Positions 53,877 to 63,894 of a stretch of DNA of 64,000 nucleotides are shown one piece after another. The position numbers and the translations under genes are program-made. A model generated the notes under the pieces. That model had not been told where the DNA came from. It made no database searches and worked only from the letters and a program-made list of their open reading frames with translations. The stretch is taken from sequence record MT161459.1; one strand, written 5' to 3'. Each line of letters begins with the position of its first letter. Position 1 is the first letter of the stretch.

Positions 53877-54046
53877 CCCTTCTAAATGATTCGGTGTACG
53901 ATTATTTCAACTTGAACTACAAGTTGCATCGGGAGGGCTGGAGTTTGACAGAGCTTGATACTATGACGCCTTTCGAGCGCACCATCTATCAACAGCTGTA
54001 CATCAACGATTTGAAAGAACGCAGACGCAATAAAGAGGAAACATGA
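53870..54046 (+). CDS. gp51: gp51-like C-terminal module in the -1 frame, probably reached by ribosomal frameshift from gp26
   Basis: Manual translation RLTLLNDSVYDYFNLNYKLHREGWSLTELDTMTPFERTIYQQLYINDLKERRRNKEET*. The Y..N..L.....SLTEL..M.P.ER pattern is gp51-like. No SD or ATG precedes the conserved part. The stop overlaps the gp29 ATG. Confidence 0.8.
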   Translation, partial: RLTLLNDSVYDYFNLNYKLHREGWSLTELDTMTPFERTIYQQLYINDLKERRRNKEET

Positions 54047-55863
54047 AAACAGAACAACAGATAGTGGAGGACTCCAGTCTAAAGCTGGCTGTCCAGCTTG
54101 ATGATGTTCGGAAGCAGACTGTTGATTTGGGAGTCGCGATAGATCTAAACACAGACGCCAACGTGGATGTCGCCAAGTCGAATGAAACGTTGGTTAAGGC
54201 AATAGATCAAGAAACGAGTTCCATCAAACGAGCTACCGAATACGTAGACACCGCAGCTTATTCCAAACGGAATGAGATAGATGTCAATGAGAAGTACCAA
54301 AAGGCGTTAGAACGCCGAACCGAGCTCGAGAATAAACTCAATGCTCAACAACCAATCATTCCATATTCAGAAACCGATCCGGAACGATTTAAGCCCAAAC
54401 AAAACACCAAACCGGAAGCTCCTGCTACCCCGAATGAGCCGGCATTTAATGGAACGCTTGAAGAATATCTCAAGGCCAATCTTGGATCGCTAAGTGATTT
54501 CAAGAAGCAGTTGCGCGAAGAACGGAAGGCCAAGGATAGAGAGAATGGAGAGGGGCTTGGAATAGCTAAGATTGCCAAGAATGCCATCCAGACGACGATG
54601 TCAGCAGGTTCCAATGCTATTTCATCTCTAGCGGATACCCTCCTACAAGGAATTCCTGGAGCGAGTATGGCTCGCAATGCGATATCTGGGACTACCAAGT
54701 TTGTCAAGGAGTCTGTCGTAGGTGGGTTCGAGTCAAGAAAGAAAACAAGGGAGCAATACGAGGCCAAGAAGTCTGATCTGACGTCCAAGTTCGAGAAGAT
54801 GCCACAATCTGCAGCACCTGCACCTGAATCTGCGCCTCCATCAACCGACGAGAAAATCCGACAGGATAGAGAGAACAAGAAGTCGGGAGAAGAGCGGACG
54901 GATCGCAAAGAGAATAGTCGCGAGCGCAAAGAAAATGAAAAGCGTCACAAATCCTTGATAGACGTGCTCAAGAATAACCAGATGTGGACATTGTTGGGTG
55001 GGATCTTCACTATGCTAGTTCCGATGTTTACTGGATTGCTGGGAACGACGAGAGGTATTCTCGGGGGCGTATTGAAACTAGGTCCAGCGCTGATTGCAAT
55101 GGGAGCTAAGCTCGTATCTGGAATGGGAGCAGCCATCGCTAACAGCCTGAAGCGAATAATGCCAGACTTCATGAAAGGCAAACTACCGGATGCCAAATCT
55201 CCAAGGATGGATCCGAAGTCAGGCAAGCCAACTGCTGAGGTTGATCCAAAGACGGGCAAACCCAGAACTACTACCACAACGACGACGACCAATACATCAT
55301 CATCTAAAGAGACGTCGAAGATTGAGCGCGTTAAAGATGGTATGAAGGGAGCTCAAACGGCGGGCGGTGAAGCGGCAGAAGCAGCTGGATCCAAAGCAGC
55401 GTCAGCTGGTGCCAAAACTGTAGGCAAGGCAGCTGGTAAGGGAGCGGCGGTCAAAGTAGCAGCTAAGGTATTGGGCAAGACCCTACTACGATTCATTCCG
55501 TTTGTTGGAACGGCTATGCTAGCTTACGACGCGTATACCATAGCGGATGAATTGTCCGGCGGAAAACTGACCGACTCGTTAATGTCCCTCAAAGACAAGG
55601 CCGTATCTGGAGCGACTGAAGCTCTTGGAATGTCGGCTGGCACAGAACCAGTTTCTGATGAGGTTGACGTTCACGAGAAAGGCGTCCAACAAGCTGAAAA
55701 GCAGGCAGAGGCTAAGAAGACGCAGGATGCCAGAGCTACAGCGGCTTATCAAGCAACGGCATTCAATACAACCAACAACAAGACTTATGCTGCATCCGGA
55801 TTTGCATTCGGTAGTGATAGCATGATGCAGTTGCAACCATATGGAGTTCAATCGGCGCGATGA
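54043..55863 (+). CDS. gp29: Baseplate hub / tape-measure protein gp29
   Basis: 606 aa, helical and low-complexity, with hydrophobic segments LLGGIFTMLVP and LLRFIPFVGTAML. Lies after the chaperones. Confidence 0.8.
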   Translation: MKTEQQIVEDSSLKLAVQLDDVRKQTVDLGVAIDLNTDANVDVAKSNETLVKAIDQETSSIKRATEYVDTAAYSKRNEIDVNEKYQKALERRTELENKLNAQQPIIPYSETDPERFKPKQNTKPEAPATPNEPAFNGTLEEYLKANLGSLSDFKKQLREERKAKDRENGEGLGIAKIAKNAIQTTMSAGSNAISSLADTLLQGIPGASMARNAISGTTKFVKESVVGGFESRKKTREQYEAKKSDLTSKFEKMPQSAAPAPESAPPSTDEKIRQDRENKKSGEERTDRKENSRERKENEKRHKSLIDVLKNNQMWTLLGGIFTMLVPMFTGLLGTTRGILGGVLKLGPALIAMGAKLVSGMGAAIANSLKRIMPDFMKGKLPDAKSPRMDPKSGKPTAEVDPKTGKPRTTTTTTTTNTSSSKETSKIERVKDGMKGAQTAGGEAAEAAGSKAASAGAKTVGKAAGKGAAVKVAAKVLGKTLLRFIPFVGTAMLAYDAYTIADELSGGKLTDSLMSLKDKAVSGATEALGMSAGTEPVSDEVDVHEKGVQQAEKQAEAKKTQDARATAAYQATAFNTTNNKTYAASGFAFGSDSMMQLQPYGVQSAR

Positions 55864-57336: not shown

Positions 57337-57810
57337 ATGAAAACGTTCTCGCAGTTTTGTGAGAACAAGCAAGGCGGATCATACGTTGCTGTCAAGTACG
57401 GCAACGTATGCTCAAATGAGATAGTCGCGACGTGCAGAGCTCTCGGGATTCCGAATCCGGTTGTGCCGGAAGATCTGCACACTACAATCATCTATTCGAG
57501 AACGGAGTTGACAAAGTACAAGGTTCCGCGTAACGTCAATCACGTCGTATCTGGCGAATTGACTCCAGCGGTATTCGAGACCTCTAAGGGGAAGCGAGTA
57601 CTTGTGTTGAAGTTGAACGATGAGTGGTTTGGACAACGTCACAGAGAAATCATGGATGCTAATAAACGAGCGACCTATGACTTCCCAGACTTTGTTCCTC
57701 ACATCACTCTCAGCTACGATCTTGGCGACTTTCCAGTTCCGACCAAGTTTGTTCTCGAAGAACCACTAACGGTGGTACGAGAGTATCACGAGGAGTTAGA
57801 TTGTGACTAA
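57337..57810 (+). CDS. acb1: gp57B / Acb1 anti-CBASS 2H phosphoesterase
   Basis: Two HxT motifs (DLHTTIIYS, PHITLSYD), G.YVAVK, and position after 57A. Confidence 0.9.
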   Translation: MKTFSQFCENKQGGSYVAVKYGNVCSNEIVATCRALGIPNPVVPEDLHTTIIYSRTELTKYKVPRNVNHVVSGELTPAVFETSKGKRVLVLKLNDEWFGQRHREIMDANKRATYDFPDFVPHITLSYDLGDFPVPTKFVLEEPLTVVREYHEELDCD

Positions 57811-58127: not shown

Positions 58128-58212
58128 GGGGATGTGGTGTAATTGGCAGCCACCCAAGTTTCAAACGCTTGTGTCGAAAGACGTCTCGGTTCGAGTCCGA
58201 GTATCCCTACCA
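58128..58212 (+). tRNA. tRNA-Leu(CAA)
   Basis: Cloverleaf with a long variable arm. CAAGT-TTCAAAC-GCTTG. CCA end. Confidence 0.9.
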
Positions 58213-58218
58213 AACTCC

Positions 58219-58304
58219 GCGAGATTAGCCGAATTGGTTTAGGCAGCAGATTTAAAATCTGTCGGCTTTGCCACCTGTGGGTTCGAGTCCCACATCTCGC
58301 ACCA
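58219..58304 (+). tRNA. tRNA-Leu(TAA)
   Basis: GCAGA-TTTAAAA-TCTGT, long variable arm, CCA end. Confidence 0.92.
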
Positions 58305-58317
58305 ACTAAGGAACACC

Positions 58318-58785
58318 ATGAAACAGAAACGTGTATTGTTGGGTACCTATGGTTATGCGTGTCGTAATGGCACCTTCATGATCATGGATCCAAAAGTTAT
58401 TGAAGCGTTCAATGAGCATCTCAAGGCCAACGGCCCATCTGCGATGTGCTTTGGTCAATCTCAGTTCAATTGCGCCGATGACGTGACTAAGTTTGAAACT
58501 GATCTGACTGACGTCATTGGCCGTCTGCACTCTGTGGAGTGGTTTGTCAATCCGAACAAGACTGTCAGCGTCTACGGTACCGTAGAACCTCTCAAGCACC
58601 CTGTGTGGAAAACCAGGAGTGTTGAGTTTAGCCTGCGGTCAATTGCTGATGTGATCCGAGAAGATATGATCAAGCCTGACGTTCCGCGTCAACGCGGCGG
58701 TAGATACGTAGTCATCAAACGCATCGTGTCTTGGGACATTCAAGATCCCGCACAATGTGCGCTGACGATCGATGATCTGAAATAA
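58318..58785 (+). CDS. Hypothetical protein, possibly a degenerate prohead-protease-fold protein
   Basis: SD AAGGA. Weak colinear resemblance to gp21 motifs by eye. Confidence 0.65.
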   Translation: MKQKRVLLGTYGYACRNGTFMIMDPKVIEAFNEHLKANGPSAMCFGQSQFNCADDVTKFETDLTDVIGRLHSVEWFVNPNKTVSVYGTVEPLKHPVWKTRSVEFSLRSIADVIREDMIKPDVPRQRGGRYVVIKRIVSWDIQDPAQCALTIDDLK

Positions 58786-58794
58786 GGAGTTGTC

Positions 58795-59046
58795 TTGTCT
58801 AAATACATCGGTATAGTAGACGGCAATGACAAAGATGGTTATAGCGGCTATGTAGCCAACCTCAATGGATCCTGCTTGTTTGCAGGATCCACGATGGATG
58901 AGCTAATTCAAGATGCTGACGAATCTGTTGTTGCTCATGTAGAGTTTTTGCTGGAGAATGACTTCAGTTTACAGCCAGACAGTATTGATCTGGTCATCAA
59001 TGACGATCAACAAGTAATCGTCATTCAATACCCCAAACCAATTTAA
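58795..59046 (+). CDS. Solo HicB-like antitoxin domain
   Basis: Y.GIV....DGY.G.V.NL.G.C...G.TMDEL...A.E.V..H.E.LLE pattern. SD AAGGAG with TTG start. Confidence 0.7.
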   Translation: MSKYIGIVDGNDKDGYSGYVANLNGSCLFAGSTMDELIQDADESVVAHVEFLLENDFSLQPDSIDLVINDDQQVIVIQYPKPI

Positions 59047-59054
59047 GGATTTGT

Positions 59055-59459
59055 ATGCCACGCTTTGTAGTCACTCCAGTATCAGGTTCCGCGCTGTCTC
59101 GTTTCATGATGAATACCGACAACGTGACTGGCCTCGTTGAAACTCACGATGGTCAGACTCTGATCCGTTTTGTGAATGCTGAAAGTCCGGAAGGTTCCAA
59201 AGGTCAGCTGATCCAAATCAAAGAGACCTTTGATCACATCCGTGCCAAGATGAAGATGGGGTACAAGCAACACGTTGCTGTTCACCCATACGACTCTCAA
59301 TATGCTCGTGTCTTGATTGACATTGAGAAGGTTGTAGGTCTGGCCGAAACTGTTCGCGGTGAAGTTGTGATGACCATCAAGGTCTCCGAGTTCTCCACTC
59401 CGGCTATCTTCGAAGTTGAAGAATCTTTCGATTACGTAGCTGAGGCTATCTCAGTTTAA
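59055..59459 (+). CDS. Protein with two tandem FlbD/SwrD-like domains
   Basis: Two ~65-aa repeats: (N/D)xxxVxGLxET...IQIKETFDHI / FEVEESFDYV. Confidence 0.65.
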   Translation: MPRFVVTPVSGSALSRFMMNTDNVTGLVETHDGQTLIRFVNAESPEGSKGQLIQIKETFDHIRAKMKMGYKQHVAVHPYDSQYARVLIDIEKVVGLAETVRGEVVMTIKVSEFSTPAIFEVEESFDYVAEAISV

Positions 59460-59499
59460 AGTTGAATCTCAGGAGATTATCGTTGATAGTCTCCTCATC

Positions 59500-59587
59500 G
59501 GAAGGTTGGCAGAGAGGCCGATCGCGACACTTTGCTAAAGTGTAGAACGGAAACGTTCCATGGGTTCGAATCCCATACCTTCCTCCA
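59500..59587 (+). tRNA. tRNA-Ser(GCT)
   Basis: ACACT-TTGCTAA-AGTGT, long variable arm, CCA end. Confidence 0.92.
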
Positions 59588-59607
59588 ATTTTACAGAGGA
59601 TTTTGTC

Positions 59608-59736
59608 ATGAAAAACATGAAACAAACAGGCTTTACCTTAATCGAAATGATATTTGCCATCTTCGGACTTGCTAGTCTGATCGGCGCTGGATTTGGGGTA
59701 TATGCCATCGTTCACTTTGTAACCAAATACTGGTAA
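59608..59736 (+). CDS. 42-aa prepilin-like peptide (class III signal peptide)
   Basis: SD GAGGA. MKNMKQTG|FTLIEMIFAIFGLASLIGAGFGVYAIVHFVTKYW*. Not in the ORF track. Confidence 0.8.
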   Translation: MKNMKQTGFTLIEMIFAIFGLASLIGAGFGVYAIVHFVTKYW

Positions 59737-59739
59737 CCT

Positions 59740-59907
59740 ATGTCAAGAACAACCCAAAATGAACTGGAAGCCCTCCAGGTTCAATCCGCTCGTATCCGTC
59801 TGGATCTCGATCGGGAATGTCTGAAACAGCAGCGTATCGAAACTGCCCGTTTAGTTGAAAACGCTAAGCGTGACAACATTCCGCTGACTGACGACCTGAA
59901 GCAATAG
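59740..59907 (+). CDS. Small coiled-coil hypothetical protein (55 aa)
   Basis: Manual translation MSRTTQNELEALQVQSARIRLDLDRECLKQQRIETARLVENAKRDNIPLTDDLKQ*. Confidence 0.6.
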   Translation: MSRTTQNELEALQVQSARIRLDLDRECLKQQRIETARLVENAKRDNIPLTDDLKQ

Positions 59908-59972
59908 TATCGTGCTCCTTCTAACGAGGGGGCATATCAAATCATCTTTGATATGCCAACGAGGAATACATC

Positions 59973-60245
59973 ATGGAACTGAATGAAATAGATTTCGTTA
60001 AAGATGTGCTGTGCGTACCGGATCGCTATGACCATTTCGCAGAAGCATTGGAAGTCATGGTCAAGGACTATTACAAAAGTAGTCGATCGATTATCTTCCG
60101 CGGATACCGCTTAGAGGAAACCTCCGTGCGTACATTCGCTAGCGTCAGCAACTGCTCATGCTGCTATCCAGATCAAGAAGAAGATAACTTCCCAATTGAG
60201 GAAGTGATCAAAATGATGTACACCTTGGGAGCGTTCGATGTTTAA
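59973..60245 (+). CDS. Hypothetical protein
   Basis: SD GAGGA, 90 aa, contains CSCC. Confidence 0.65.
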   Translation: MELNEIDFVKDVLCVPDRYDHFAEALEVMVKDYYKSSRSIIFRGYRLEETSVRTFASVSNCSCCYPDQEEDNFPIEEVIKMMYTLGAFDV

Positions 60246-60456
60246 GTATCTATTGGTTACCTACATGCAACTGTATGCTGGGATGAACAGTTCCATTGGA
60301 TCTCACTCCACAGAGAGTTACAAAACTCTGGCTGAATGCGAGGGAGCAAAGACTGCGTACATCCAGATGATGGAAGAGCACAAGATCAAAGATAGCGGTA
60401 TGATCGTCAAAAACATCGTCTGGGCGGATTGTAAAGCAATCTTCGTAGATCAATAG
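60238..60456 (+). CDS. Hypothetical protein
   Basis: SD GGAG. Overlaps the previous stop. Confidence 0.6.
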   Translation: MFKYLLVTYMQLYAGMNSSIGSHSTESYKTLAECEGAKTAYIQMMEEHKIKDSGMIVKNIVWADCKAIFVDQ

Positions 60457-60469
60457 TTTAGACACCGTG

Positions 60470-60476
60470 CTAAATA
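60470..60476 (+). promoter_or_regulatory. Late promoter CTAAATA upstream of a non-coding structured region
   Basis: Same GCTAAATA octamer as the structural-gene promoters. Confidence 0.65.
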
Positions 60477-60484
60477 CTAGACAA

Positions 60485-60983
60485 TAAGGATAACAGCGCG
60501 TTGATCTCTGCTCGTCACGTCAACGCCTTTTTAGAATGGAGAATCTCCCACATCCTGGATGTGTTCTAGTCGCCATTCAGCAGCCTTACTATACCTACCG
60601 CAAACGAGTTACAGCTCGGGTGGGAACTGTATGGAATAAATGTGGTTGCTTGCCAGCGTCAACTGCATCTGCAATAGCTGGTTGGACGGACCGTTCCACC
60701 TAACACGGTTGATAGGCTGTAACCTATCTTAGAGCGTCCCCGATGAGCCAGACTTGGCCTGGGGAACGCTTGCTAATGGGATCCAATTGGATGTCATTAT
60801 CAAGCGATGTTTAACTGCGCAAGAGCTTGTATGTGTCCGTCGCTAGAACGGCGGTACCTACCTTGGGCGGTCATGCTTCTAGGCACTGACATGGATAGAC
60901 ACTAACGTGATCTTGGAAAATCTTCGGATAGCTAGTACCGATACGCTAACAAGATGCTGCGGATCCATCAGTTTACAACGCTG
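60485..60983 (+). ncRNA. Candidate large structured ncRNA (~500 nt)
   Basis: No ORF in the track, many nested helices, a cUUCGg loop, and possible 5'/3' closing helix. Confidence 0.55.
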
Positions 60984-60990
60984 CTAAATA
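60984..60990 (+). promoter_or_regulatory. Late promoter CTAAATA
   Basis: GCTAAATA at the boundary between the two structured regions. Confidence 0.6.
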
Positions 60991-60999
60991 GATGTATAG

Positions 61000-61260
61000 T
61001 TCACTGGTGAGTGCAACTAAATGGGTATTCTCGCGACCTTCGGCTAGACTGTTGGAGCGTATGTTGATCAAAACAGCCCATTTAGTTGCGTTTACTTCGG
61101 ATACTAAAGCTAGTATGCTTAGTCTCTGTATACTGTAATTCGTAAGTAAGTAGTTGAAACAGTTAGTATGCTTCGGCGGAAGACTCGACTAAACAAACGC
61201 GAGGCGTGGGTATACAGAGATAAGTTTACTACGGAGGTGATCTGGCGTATACTTAAACAC
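61000..61260 (+). ncRNA. Candidate structured ncRNA (~260 nt)
   Basis: 13-bp helix 61013-61025/61077-61089, 11-bp helix 61123-61133/61210-61220, three TTCG motifs. Confidence 0.55.
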
Positions 61261-61261
61261 A

Positions 61262-61318
61262 AGGATGCTTACAGCAAACAAAACTCATTCTGCATATGAA
61301 ACGAATGCATCCTGTTAA
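61262..61318 (+). ncRNA. CAGCAA-motif hairpin element, copy 1
   Basis: AGGATGC-TTACAGCAA...GCATCCT-GTTAA. Confidence 0.5.
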
Positions 61319-61323
61319 AATCC

Positions 61324-61408
61324 GGAGGAGTGGCTCAAAGGTTGAGCGGCGGACCGTTAATCCGCGAGCGTATGCTCTATGTAGGTTCGAGTCCTACCTC
61401 CTCCGCCA
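61324..61408 (+). tRNA. tRNA-Asn(GTT) with a long variable arm
   Basis: GGAGGAG/CTCCTCC-G-CCA, GCGGA-CCGTTAA-TCCGC, variable arm GAGC-GTAT-GCTC. Confidence 0.85.
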
Positions 61409-61437
61409 AATTCGTCGAAAGACAACAAGAACGCATA

Positions 61438-61548
61438 GGGAATAATTCAGCAACAATACTTCTTTCCTTTATAAAAGAACGTCATTAAGGTTCGATTCCT
61501 TAACCAGCGCGTACTGGATGGTATAGGCGTACAAAGTATTCCCGTTAA
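61438..61548 (+). ncRNA. CAGCAA-motif element, copy 2, containing a T-arm-like hairpin
   Basis: GGGAATA-ATTCAGCAA...TTAAGG-TTCGATT-CCTTAA...TATTCCC-GTTAA. Confidence 0.5.
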
Positions 61549-61549
61549 T

Positions 61550-61624
61550 AGCCATGTAGCTCAGCGGTAGAGCACACCCCTGATAAGGGTGGGGTCAGCA
61601 GTTCAATCCTGCTCATGGCTACCA
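61550..61624 (+). tRNA. tRNA-Ile(GAT)
   Basis: CACCC-CTGATAA-GGGTG, CCA end. Confidence 0.93.
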
Positions 61625-61632
61625 ATTTTCAA

Positions 61633-61708
61633 GCTGATGTAGCTCAGTAGGTAGAGCAGCGCATTCGTAACGCGAAGGTCGCAGGTTCGATTCCTGTCCT
61701 CAGCACCA
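61633..61708 (+). tRNA. tRNA-Thr(CGT)
   Basis: Loop TTCGTAA, weak anticodon stem, CCA end. Confidence 0.85.
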
Positions 61709-61714
61709 ATTTGC

Positions 61715-61789
61715 GCCTCTATAGCTCAGTGGTAGAGCAGTTGCTTTGTAAGCATCAGGTCCTCGGTTCAATCCCGAGTGGGGGCTCCA
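61715..61789 (+). tRNA. tRNA-Thr(TGT)
   Basis: Loop TTTGTAA, CCA end. Confidence 0.9.
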
Positions 61790-61870
61790 AGTTGTGGGAT
61801 CTAGATGCCCCTTTGAAGCATCTGGCATGTAACTAGTTACATGAATGGTTTCTTGAGAGTGACCATTCAT

Positions 61871-61946
61871 GTGACGGTAGTTCAGTTGGTAGAGCTCCAG
61901 GTTGTGATCCTGGTAGTCACGGGTTCGATCCCCGTCCGTCACCCCA
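61871..61946 (+). tRNA. tRNA-His(GTG)
   Basis: CCAGG-TTGTGAT-CCTGG, C73, CCA end. The -1 base is T, not G. Confidence 0.92.
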
Positions 61947-61953
61947 AACACTG

Positions 61954-62026
61954 GGGATGTTAGTGAAATGGTGTCACTCCAGGGCTTTTCGCCTTGGCAA
62001 GTCCGTTCGATTCGGAACATCCCCCA
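61954..62026 (+). tRNA. Atypical tRNA-like gene (UUU anticodon, Lys-like)
   Basis: GGGATGT/ACATCCC followed directly by CCA. 6-bp anticodon stem, loop CTTTTCG, 4-bp T stem with TTCGATT. Confidence 0.55.
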
Positions 62027-62032
62027 TATTAC

Positions 62033-62106
62033 GGGAACGTAGTTAAACTCCAAACGCTGGTCACTGGGACCAGAGATGCGAGTAGTAAGCCTCGTCGTTT
62101 CCACCA
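62033..62106 (+). tRNA. Degenerate tRNA-like gene (loop CACTGGG, no TTC loop)
   Basis: GGGAACG/CGTTTCC-A-CCA, CTGGT/ACCAG stem, T-like stem GCGAG/CTCGT with loop TAGTAAGC. Confidence 0.5.
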
Positions 62107-62447
62107 GATCCGCTAGCAATAGCAGATATAAAAAGCTGACCGAGACCTCTTATTCAGGCAGGTGGTTTGATACCCACTGTGAATAATGTAGCTTCCTTTC
62201 CTGTAATAAGGTTCCAGACCGCGTCGGGTAAAAGGTTACATATCGAATCTGGTTGTTGTTTGGCAACAACCGATGTACAGTTAGAGGGTTGTAGCGTCGT
62301 CTAGCTATCTGTACGTTGAAGTTATCCTGACGAAAAGCTGTCGTATCCCGTAGAGGACTTTGGGTGATCATCACGATACGAGCATCAGATCACCGACCCA
62401 TTAAGTTGGCCGCTCGTGAAAACTAAACACGTGTCGCAAGGCACGAT
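62107..62447 (+). ncRNA. Candidate structured ncRNA (~340 nt)
   Basis: GCAA tetraloop hairpins at both ends and several internal helices. The only tracked ORF here is a short minus-strand shadow. Confidence 0.5.
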
Positions 62448-62449
62448 AT

Positions 62450-62525
62450 CGTGACATAGCTCAGCTGGTAGAGCAGGTGCTTCATACGCATCAGGTCAGT
62501 GGTTCGATCCCACTTGTCACGACCA
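62450..62525 (+). tRNA. tRNA-Met(CAT) (elongator or Ile2 type)
   Basis: GGTGC-TTCATAC-GCATC, paired C1:G72, CCA end. Confidence 0.9.
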
Positions 62526-62548
62526 ATTTCAAAACTCAAAGGTGTAAT

Positions 62549-62692
62549 ATGTTTGGAACTCTGTTTGGCGAATCCACTATTACCAAGATTGCTGACATCG
62601 CTGTTGGTGTTGCGGTAGGTGCAGTAGTCGCGGATGTAGCAGTTTCTGCTGCAGAAGAAGTAATCGAACTGATCACTGGTGAAGATGATTAA
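62549..62692 (+). CDS. Small hydrophobic hypothetical protein (47 aa)
   Basis: ATG at 62549 after AAAGGTG. The earlier track start lies inside the tRNA-Met. Confidence 0.55.
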   Translation: MFGTLFGESTITKIADIAVGVAVGAVVADVAVSAAEEVIELITGEDD

Positions 62693-62708
62693 TAATTGGG
62701 GTTCGCCC

Positions 62709-62847
62709 CAATTTCAAAACGATCTACCCTAACACGCCCATGGGACGAGCTAAGCACTCGTATGAAGCTAAGGACCGCAAGTCTGTGCAATCAAATGCTA
62801 GCCTGATAGATGGTCAGGTGGGGACGCGATAGATCGTTTTGAAATTG
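62709..62847 (+). ncRNA. Candidate ~140-nt multibranch ncRNA
   Basis: Perfect 18-bp closing helix CAATTTCAAAACGATCTA/TAGATCGTTTTGAAATTG enclosing several small hairpins. Confidence 0.6.
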
Positions 62848-62857
62848 TGGAGGATTT

Positions 62858-63073
62858 ATGTTTAAACTTGAATGTAGATCTCCGGAAGATTTGGCCGTTG
62901 CAAATGCGACCATAAATACCGGTATAGGGGAAAGATCAGCAGCTAATGGAAAGGCACTGTTTGTTTCTGGATTGACGTCCAGTAGACTTGCAGAAGTGAT
63001 GGTATTAGCTTACGCATATCCCGTAGATCCAACGAATGAAGATAGGAGTTATTTCGATGAGCACCGATGCTGA
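62858..63073 (+). CDS. Hypothetical protein
   Basis: SD GGAGG, 71 aa. Confidence 0.6.
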   Translation: MFKLECRSPEDLAVANATINTGIGERSAANGKALFVSGLTSSRLAEVMVLAYAYPVDPTNEDRSYFDEHRC

Positions 63074-63269
63074 CGCACGCGAAGGTCGCGGAGCTGCCAA
63101 CGGCGGTAACCAGAACTGGTATAACAGTCCATTGTGGGACAATATCGGTCCGAAGAAAAAAGTTTACGAAGCTGCTAAAGTAGAGGATACTACAGAGGTA
63201 GCCAAGCCTAAGACTGAAGAAGAATTGATTCGGGAAAGGCAACGTGCAGCGTTTAAGTACGCGTACTAA
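63057..63269 (+). CDS. Hypothetical protein
   Basis: SD AGGAG before ATG 63057 (MSTDADAREGRG...). Confidence 0.6.
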   Translation: MSTDADAREGRGAANGGNQNWYNSPLWDNIGPKKKVYEAAKVEDTTEVAKPKTEEELIRERQRAAFKYAY

Positions 63270-63278
63270 AAGAACAGA

Positions 63279-63354
63279 TCTCCGTTCATCTAGCGGTCTA
63301 GGATATCGCCCTTTCAAGGCGAGTACACGGATTCGAATTCCGTACGGAGAACCA
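63279..63354 (+). tRNA. tRNA-Glu(TTC)
   Basis: TCGCC-CTTTCAA-GGCGA, CCA end. Confidence 0.92.
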
Positions 63355-63360
63355 AATTGT

Positions 63361-63439
63361 TGCGGGTTGGAGGAGTCTGGTCGTCCTCGCGAGTCTCATA
63401 AGCTCGAGATCGGTGGTTCAAATCCACCACCCGCATCCA
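63361..63439 (+). tRNA. tRNA-Met(CAT), initiator-like
   Basis: CGAGT-CTCATAA-GCTCG, T loop TTCAAAT, CCA end. Confidence 0.85.
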
Positions 63440-63486
63440 ATTTAACGGTGATACGCTACCGTAAGTGCGACTTTGAAATAGTTTTT

Positions 63487-63569
63487 GGTCGATTAACCGG
63501 TAATTGGTAGCCGCGCGGTCTGTAAAACCGTTCTTATGACTCTTGGTTCAAGTCCAAGATCGACCACCA
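63487..63569 (+). tRNA. tRNA-Tyr(GTA)
   Basis: GCGGT-CTGTAAA-ACCGT, variable arm, CCA end. Confidence 0.92.
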
Positions 63570-63643
63570 AATTCCTATGGAAGCTAAAGCCACGAAGGCA
63601 AGACGAGCGTTGAAAGCTATACGCAAAAACCTTCCCGAATTCA

Positions 63644-63718
63644 GGTGCATTAGTATAATGGCTATTATTCGCGACTGTCTATCGCAAGATACGAGTTCGA
63701 TCCTCGTATGCACCGCCA
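63644..63718 (+). tRNA. tRNA-Asp(GTC), copy 1
   Basis: GCGA-CTGTCTA-TCGC, G73, CCA end. Confidence 0.88.
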
Positions 63719-63724
63719 AACAAC

Positions 63725-63811
63725 GGAGAGCTAAGAGATAAAGAGTCTCAGTCCCTCGTAATGGGACCGCTTTACAAGCCTTTCTGGAATCGAAGCCAGA
63801 GCACTCCACCA
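63725..63811 (+). tRNA. Degenerate class-II tRNA-like gene (GUA in loop)
   Basis: GGAGAGC/GCACTCC-A-CCA, GTCCC-TCGTAAT-GGGAC, long variable arm, non-canonical T loop AATCGAAG. Confidence 0.55.
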
Positions 63812-63817
63812 TACAAT

Positions 63818-63894
63818 AGTGATGTAGTTTAGTTGGTTAAAATCCCGGCCTGTCACGTCGGAGAGCGCGGGTTCGAGTCCCGTCATCACTGCCA
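63818..63894 (+). tRNA. tRNA-Asp(GTC), copy 2
   Basis: CCGGC-CTGTCAC-GTCGG, G73, CCA end. Confidence 0.93.

Follow-up and report, generated by a model that had tools for sequence, protein, structure and literature searches.

At the right end of the genome of Ahp1_CNU-2021 (MT161459.1), a T4-like Aeromonas phage of the Straboviridae (218 kb, host A. hydrophila), a gene of 42 codons encodes a peptide that begins like a type IV prepilin and ends without a globular head, which raises the question of what use a phage could have for the stem of a pilin. Here, we address this question by comparing the peptide with curated models, with its homologues in phages and metagenomes, and with the phage proteins that are known to act on pili. 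Throughout, the window denotes the whole stretch of 64,000 nt that was analysed, which corresponds, with 100% identity, to the right end of the record.

Results

The reading frame and its surroundings

The reading frame consists of 42 codons and a TAA stop on the plus strand, and its translation (protein P0001) matches exactly the peptide quoted in a first-pass annotation of this DNA; the good Shine-Dalgarno sequence claimed there is present as GAGGA, 7 nt before the ATG (Table 1). GenBank lists the frame as CDS AHP1_3091 (QIW87140.1), named 'hypothetical protein' only, and it has therefore not been overlooked by annotation. A second in-frame ATG at 59617, read from the sequence, offers an alternative start, and were translation to begin there, the leader would shrink to 5 aa. 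The gene is a member of a same-strand series of small genes and 15 tRNAs. For the 55-aa ORF that follows it, Pfam gave no match, and this ORF is unrelated to the neighbour of the homologue in phage TS3 described below.

Table 1. Features in and around the mini-prepilin gene (positions refer to the window)
Feature	Position	Strand	Evidence and remarks
tRNA-Ser(gct)	59500..59587	+	ARAGORN, Rfam, GenBank; directly upstream, 20 nt before the mini-prepilin gene
Shine-Dalgarno sequence GAGGA	59596..59600	+	Read from the sequence; 7 nt 5' of the ATG
Mini-prepilin gene AHP1_3091	59608..59736	+	Translation; GenBank CDS; N_methyl 22.1 bits; TIGR02532 16.3 bits
Basic leader MKNMKQTG (Q-3, G-1) with predicted prepilin-peptidase cleavage site	59608..59631	+	Family statistics; MshA/PilA alignment
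Predicted mature peptide, 34 aa, modelled as a single continuous transmembrane helix	59632..59733	+	Family lengths; AF2
Pilin core FTLIEM (+1 to +6; T+2, E+5)	59632..59649	+	Family conservation
C-terminal signature Y24-x3-H28-F29-x-x-K32-(F/Y)33-W34, here YAIVHFVTKYW, then stop	59701..59733	+	Family conservation; leaderless relatives; only copy of the tail motif in the window
Downstream 55-aa ORF	59740..59907	+	Starts 3 nt past the mini-prepilin stop; context, not a conserved partner

Ten metagenomic contigs that are close relatives of Ahp1 keep the ORF in the same synteny, and the near-identical metagenomic copies show 2 amino-acid changes (N3S, I15A) as against 6-7 codons with synonymous changes only. 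A word-indexed protein search with the single window peptide as query returned near-identical copies only. Scans for sigma-70 promoters, terminators and T4 late promoters near AHP1_3091 gave results at background level, and the timing of its expression cannot be read from such signals.

Several further observations concern this part of the genome. From 58128 to 63894 (+), ARAGORN finds 15 tRNAs as against 12 in GenBank (one pseudo-tRNA); those lacking annotation are Lys(ttt) at 61953-62025, Glu(ttc) at 63279-63354 and Tyr(gta) at 63487-63569, and Rfam confirms Glu(ttc), and not Lys(ttt) or Tyr(gta), at the gathering score. Between about 60460 and 61320 (~850 nt), from the small-ORF cluster to tRNA-Asn, neither a convincing ORF nor an Rfam match at the gathering score was found. 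The gene at 57337-57810 (+), again a 'hypothetical protein' in MT161459.1, encodes a 157-aa protein that matches the Pfam model of the anti-CBASS phosphodiesterase Acb1 with 112 bits and adjoins a dNMP-kinase gene, a position that T4 57B shares. An 83-aa ORF at 58795-59046 (+) scores as a HicB-like antitoxin with 25.5 bits, just below the Pfam cut-off of 27, and no HicA-like partner was seen near it. Lastly, the 606-aa protein encoded at 54043-55863 (+), between a baseplate chaperone and a tail-completion gene, combines a poly-threonine tract with a long Ala/Gly-rich hydrophobic middle and has no Pfam match on record.

The N-terminus carries a class III signal

The first-pass annotation had read the N-terminus as a class III signal and had named an HMM search with the N_methyl motif as a way of checking this. 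Both curated prepilin models are reached by the window peptide, as Pfam N_methyl (PF07963) gives 22.1 bits and thus passes its cut-off of 21.2, and TIGR02532 gives 16.3 bits, which is exactly its threshold of 16.3. Higher values were obtained for two relatives, with 39-41 bits for N_methyl and 30-31 bits for TIGR02532 (P0003 and P0011). The class III signal in the window peptide is statistically real. By definition, the hydrophilic leader of such a signal has Gly or Ala as its last residue, and the 20-25 residues behind it are mainly hydrophobic and in many cases include Glu at +5 (PMC10191384); the window peptide shows this order with MKNMKQTG, then FTLIEM and a hydrophobic stretch. Positions 1-24 of the family profile described below align with full-length MshA and PilA precursors in the PDB (e.g., M-K-R-Q-Q-G-F-T-L-I-E-L), and the consensus signal of the mini-prepilins, M-K-K-Q-K-G before and F/Y-T-L-I-E-L after the cleavage site, is type IVa-like.

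Structural pilins are recognised by a 'lollipop' fold with alpha1C on a globular head. In agreement with the head-less prepilin that had been postulated for this locus, AF2 models the window peptide as a single continuous helix of residues 11-41 with a mean pLDDT of 91.5, and the mature part comprises 34 aa. As the lollipop fold is lacking, we class the window peptide as a carrier of a prepilin signal only and not as a pilin, and with the head missing it is unlikely that it polymerises into a filament.

A large family with a fixed length and an invariant tail

By tblastn, a 37-aa homologue was found in the Aeromonas phage vB_AdhS_TS3, a T5-like member of the Demerecviridae that is unrelated to Ahp1. 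This homologue (OP820700.1, 7483-7596; locus L002, 2995-3108 (+)) is not annotated in GenBank. It starts with an ATG that overlaps the stop of an 81-aa gene just upstream, and it is located about 5 kb away from the A1 gene, among small ORFs that form a divergent cluster. The Ahp1 and TS3 peptides have in common the leader, the G before FTLIE and a C-terminal HF-x-x-K-(F/Y)-W. A comparison of the neighbours showed the flanking genes of the two copies to be unrelated, and hence the mini-prepilin gene moves alone.

Back-translated motifs retrieved another 13 loci from IMG/VR, with ORFs of 37-47 aa and of like design, and among 1.84 billion cluster representatives, a 15-member profile matched 706 at E<=1e-3, 84 of them at E<=1e-10. 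The 149 representatives that were read are almost all about 40 aa long, most of them exactly 40 aa. In the 148 that are of the prepilin type, which were selected by the profile and are thus biased toward it, the residues whose loss among homologues would, according to the first-pass annotation, have refuted its reading are kept, with G-1 in 100%, F/Y+1 in 94% and E+5 in 98%. The same sample has Q-3 in 89%, T+2 in 100% and L+6 in 82% (L or M in 88%), and at the other end of the peptide Y24 in 87%, H28 in 99%, and F29, K32 and W34 in 100% each. Information content of the family profile resides in an N-terminal block (1-6) and a C-terminal block (24-34), and the end of the latter, HFVTKYW in the window peptide, is conserved more strongly than any other part of the family, a feature beyond what had been noted before. 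The general form of the C-terminal block is Y-x3-H-F-(I/V)-x-K-(F/Y)-W-COOH, with the stop directly after. In the profile, the residues L6-I10-L13-L16-G20-Y24-H28-K32 form a stripe with a spacing of 3-4 residues, i.e., one face of the helix.

The length of the mature part is similarly constrained. Measured from +1 to the terminal Trp, it is 34 in 141 of the 148 representatives, the others having 31 (4), 35 (2) or 38 (1), and a motif-anchored IMG/VR sample without length selection gave the same picture, with 34 (11), 31 (3), 35 (1) and 38 (1). Lengths of 32, 33, 36 and 37 have zero cases in both samples, the profile-selected and the motif-anchored one. Since the variants mostly lie about one helical turn apart, the two ends of the helix would keep their relative orientation, that is, the helical phase. 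The window peptide shows every one of these family features, from the ~40-aa precursor and the 34-aa mature part to Y24, H28, F29, K32, W34 and the stop.

The mini-prepilins with an HF-x2-K-(F/Y)-W tail are a large and previously undescribed family that is specific to phages. Pfam, NCBIfam, PHROGs and PADLOC hold no model that spans the whole peptide or the tail; the prepilin-type members match only the generic N_methyl and TIGR02532 models and, weakly, the N-terminus of pilin PHROGs, the leaderless members introduced below have no match in any of these four collections, and the defence-system models of PADLOC-DB gave no match among 8 family members. Some JGI records name members automatically as 'prepilin-type N-terminal cleavage/methylation domain-containing protein' or 'PulG/PulJ', and the tail and leader motif strings were not found in the searchable literature. 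The possibility that the C-terminal aromatic residue is an OMP-like or DegS-type signal was set aside; the tail motif of the family does not, we presume, fit the Y-x-F of such signals.

The tail also occurs without the prepilin signal

When IMG/VR was scanned for the C-terminal heptad plus stop alone, 82 stretches were obtained, of which 77 are ORFs of 29-59 aa in which a single hydrophobic helix links a short N-terminus to the motif. As a control, a DNA pattern with reversed residue order gave 5 matches as opposed to 42 for the matching true pattern. Among the 66 unique peptides with the tail motif, 16 have a prepilin signal and 50, about three quarters, have none. These leaderless peptides begin near the start of the mature prepilin-type peptide and have the final 12 residues as well as a Gly at -15 in common with it; they often carry F-W-G at -17 to -15, and their N-terminus is basic in one way or another. 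Within this set of sequences, it is thus the tail and not the leader that is the most conserved element, and the class III signal is a trait of a subfamily. As one-helix phage peptides without a leader share it, the tail may be the effector part, in which case the target need not be a pilus machine. Moreover, with 50 of the 66 peptides lacking a leader, whatever core function the wider family has would not require processing by a prepilin peptidase.

Two observations on single leaderless members may be added. The 196-kb phage contig IMGVR_UViG_3300033121_002101 bears two differing ones (L040, 9880-9972 (-); L103, 2495-2587 (-)), which therefore are paralogues within one genome. Ten IMG/VR contigs with a GC content of about 40% and with neighbours in common (L078, L082, L083, L089, L090, L094, L099, L100, L102 and L106) carry one identical 34-aa member, of which L095 has a near-identical variant; this member appears to mark a common environmental phage lineage.

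Distribution and genomic context

The loci of the family range from 24 to 67% GC and include jumbo phages, namely a 353-kb contig and the 462-kb uncultured phage LR756500.1. A DNA pattern combining leader and tail gave a single match among 185,579 species-representative bacterial genomes, a 40-aa peptide on contig27 of Paraburkholderia antibiotica (L026, 277-399 (-)). This peptide is identical to one in the IMG/VR provirus 2902767014_000002 and lies ~3.5 kb from a LysR-type host gene, from which we conclude that some members reside on temperate phages. Isolate phages in which a member was detectable by tblastn are Ahp1 and TS3 only, both of them on Aeromonas, and this count is a lower bound, the low-complexity filter of tblastn probably hiding further members.

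Clustering of the neighbours revealed no partner gene conserved across loci, save within one near-identical group. The PHROG-annotated neighbours of the prepilin-type loci are genes of early functions and DNA metabolism (RecE-like exonuclease, NinB, SSB, endonuclease VII, hydrolase), and there is no lysis gene among the annotated neighbours of 16 loci. In Ahp1, AHP1_3091 resides in the tRNA/accessory region, 1.8 kb downstream of the Acb1 homologue.

Discussion

Our reading of the mini-prepilin, which we put forward tentatively and with rather less than even confidence, is that of a head-less pilin stem that would jam the assembly of type IV pili and/or the T2SS once it has been matured by the prepilin peptidase. 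The peptide would insert into the membrane with its N-terminus in the cytoplasm, a topology suggested by the basic leader; in prepilins, the leader stays on the cytoplasmic side upon insertion, and it is there that the prepilin peptidase cuts (PMC10191384). The enzyme of the host, TapD in Aeromonas, would then remove the leader and N-methylate F+1, leaving a head-less stem of 34 aa. That the host should be piliated, as the first-pass annotation had surmised, agrees with what is known of the genus, which has two type IV pili: in A. hydrophila, the PilD orthologue TapD is needed for Tap pili as well as for type II secretion, and Bfp pili are also present (PMC4997093). By means of T2, E5 and L6, the stem would be brought into the assembly site of a type IV filament in a pilin-like manner, given that Glu5 docks a pilin by forming a pair with the N-terminal amine of the next subunit up (PMC10191384). 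The helix face and the aromatic/basic tail would subsequently bind either the platform in the inner membrane or the base of the filament, and this binding would stall extension, with the peptide acting as a chain terminator or as a jam. The tail would be located at the periplasmic edge of the membrane, where the platform would grip a pilin; how the platform protein handles pilins is an open question in the field, and one current model has it clamp the extra-cytoplasmic part of the pilin helix for extraction (PMC10191384). As an outcome, type IV pili and/or the T2SS pseudopilus would be shut down early in infection, which would exclude pilus-dependent competitor phages and serve the take-over of the host. 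There are precedents for such an action of phage proteins, namely PfsE, which blocks type IV pili (PMC8764522), and, as proposals, phage FimU and the 60-aa truncated PilA of lytic phages (PMC12952977). Cleavage, target and phenotype are what we infer from the sequences.

Cleavage of a prepilin itself is known to need little beyond G-1. The near-invariance of T2, E5 and L6 exceeds this need and thus suggests selection on a step after cleavage, i.e., pilin-like docking, and the conserved face together with the fixed length points to a defined helix-helix partner that spans the membrane. It is for this reason that, of the two modes of action that the first-pass annotation had offered, a decoy or a peptide that caps or poisons assembly, we favour the poisoning of assembly as the part that fits best with T+2, E+5 and L+6, and see the decoy disfavoured by the tail, the 34-aa length and the leaderless relatives. 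Among the observations that speak against a jam of type IV filaments are that the window peptide barely reaches the curated cut-offs and that the majority of the tail-motif peptides (50/66) are leaderless, so that the target could be unrelated to these filaments. The span from 24 to 67% GC also counts against it, as it points to a very general target, although the platforms of type IV filaments are general as well.

As the foremost alternative, it is possible, if doubtful, that the peptide is instead a membrane effector whose helix face and tail bind another widespread inner-membrane or periplasmic protein, with the DNA-entry route of a superinfecting phage, a sensor kinase, a protease or a membrane defence effector as candidates, and that the class III signal serves topology and processing only, allowing the basic anchor to be cut off and the new N-terminus to receive its methyl group. 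The leaderless relatives with their shared last 12 residues and G at -15 would be readily explained in this way, as would the very broad GC and host range, the stand-alone gene without a partner and the location near counter-defence or host take-over genes such as Acb1. A signal for topology alone, however, would not need T+2 at 100%, E+5 at 98%, L+6 at 82% and Q-3 at 89%, the leaderless members insert with any basic N-terminus, and the N-terminal 24 residues of the mini-prepilins resemble those of real major pilins. The decoy, a competitive substrate or inhibitor of PilD/TapD that would starve all type IV filaments of mature subunits, could draw on a canonical leader with G-1, Q-3 and a basic -2 as in major pilins and on the fact that in Aeromonas pili and the T2SS depend on one and the same enzyme. 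We nevertheless consider it improbable, as a decoy has no need for an invariant tail on the periplasmic side, for a length of exactly 34 aa or for a helix stripe, leaderless relatives cannot act as one, and a substrate that is turned over would presumably be a poor inhibitor unless present in large excess.

Being small and having a single transmembrane helix, the peptide could also be thought of as a holin, an antiholin or a small toxin, and some small single-helix phage peptides are indeed holins or membrane toxins. Such a lysis or permeabilising role is quite improbable in view of the 16 loci, at which the annotated neighbours are early and recombination genes and no lysis gene is found, of the location of the Ahp1 copy in a tRNA/accessory region, of the invariant terminal motif and the pilin-type signal, both atypical of holins, and of the fact that no holin match was obtained in PHROG or Pfam. 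For a stub that is built along the pilus and alters the receptor surface while assembly continues, there is a precedent in the FimU of prophages (P-FimU), a short P-PilA has been proposed to be incorporated (PMC12952977), and E5 is conserved; such a structural substitute is very improbable all the same, since a mature peptide of 34 aa has neither an alpha1C nor a globular head to offer to the filament surface, and most members are found on non-integrated phages, whereas P-FimU acts from prophages. Lastly, 42 codons and curated scores at the threshold are what one would expect from a chance reading frame beside a tRNA, a notion that is rendered negligible by the mainly synonymous changes in related phages, by homologues both in TS3, an Aeromonas phage unrelated to Ahp1, and in metagenomic clusters that number in the hundreds, and by the 42 matches of the true C-terminal DNA pattern against 5 of the reversed control. 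By the same comparisons, AHP1_3091 is a real and probably translated gene, accessory to the T4-like phage that carries it.

Returning to the stem that would jam type IV filament assembly, one could go further and speculate, as a doubtful possibility, that phages of many hosts carry in it a general terminator of filament chains, armed by the prepilin peptidase of the host, whose tail locks onto a conserved platform of the PilC/GspF class, and that the leaderless relatives would hit the same site unprocessed. If this were true, the family would provide a minimal, peptide-sized general inhibitor that acts on pili, competence pili and type II secretion alike, and at the same time a natural probe of the grip of the platform on pilins.

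What is new, as far as can be read from the sequences, is the size of the family, its restriction to phages, the rigid 34-aa design, the invariant tail and the link to leaderless peptides; phage pilin mimics and small inhibitors of type IV pili are a kind of protein that is already known. If our proposal is correct, a natural peptide of 34 residues that enters the pilus machine would offer a simple means of probing, both genetically and structurally, how pilins are docked and extracted. It would also stand for a new class of phage factors for superinfection exclusion or host take-over, and peptides that inhibit pili and secretion could be modelled on it. Whatever the function may be, more than 700 clusters of small phage proteins have been defined that gene callers often skip, as in the case of TS3.

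Comparison with known systems

In type IVa major pilins, MSHA pilins and T2SS pseudopilins, the same order of elements is found as in the mini-prepilins, namely a basic leader up to Q-(K/R)-G, F/Y+1, T+2, E+5, L+6 and a hydrophobic helix. Unlike those pilins, the mini-prepilins lack alpha1C and the head, have a mature part of 34 aa with an invariant tail of their own, and are encoded by phages and almost absent from bacterial genomes. A prepilin-type N-terminus is likewise present in a 'pilin' of T4-like cyanophages (phrog_3433, ~127 aa; e.g., Synechococcus phages S-CAM7 and ACG-2014f), which is, however, three times longer and has no HF-x2-K-(F/Y)-W tail, and the match between our family and this PHROG (E-values 0.0016 to 0.19) is confined to the N-terminus.

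Closer in kind are the truncated PilA-like proteins of six lytic Pseudomonas phages, which comprise approximately the N-terminal 60 residues and for which it has been proposed, in a passing mention, that they enter type IV pili or inhibit their assembly (Sztanko et al., 2026, PMC12952977). Like these, the mini-prepilins are head-less N-termini of pilins encoded by virulent phages; unlike them (~60 aa, with no tail motif reported), they are ~40 aa long with 34 aa in the mature form and have a distinct tail, a comparison that is made by description. The same work describes P-FimU minor pilins and prophage PilA homologues as pilin mimics encoded by phages in phage-versus-phage competition (PMC12952977). 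Pilin mimicry that exploits the pilus machinery of the host is a trait in common, but P-FimU and prophage PilA are full-length proteins with globular domains that are expressed from prophages and built into functional pili, whereas the mini-prepilins are head-less.

The small inhibitor PfsE of the Pf filamentous phages, finally, is a 30-aa peptide with its N-terminus inside that blocks the extension of type IV pili by binding PilC through an aromatic motif. This motif is indispensable, activity is lost when a tag is placed at the C-terminus, and the peptide confers superinfection exclusion (PMC8764522). PfsE stems from temperate filamentous phages, has no prepilin signal, and bears its YxWGW in the middle of the helix, as opposed to the HF-x2-K-(F/Y)-W at the C-terminus of the mini-prepilins, again compared by description. 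The YxWGW motif is absent from the window peptide and from the profile of the prepilin-type family, and the FWG at -17 to -15 of some leaderless relatives bears a loose resemblance only to it. The mini-prepilins may share with PfsE the design of a tiny single-helix peptide of the inner membrane with its N-terminus inside, the helix being predicted by AF2 and the topology suggested by the basic leader, and PfsE is similar in architecture to the leaderless relatives.
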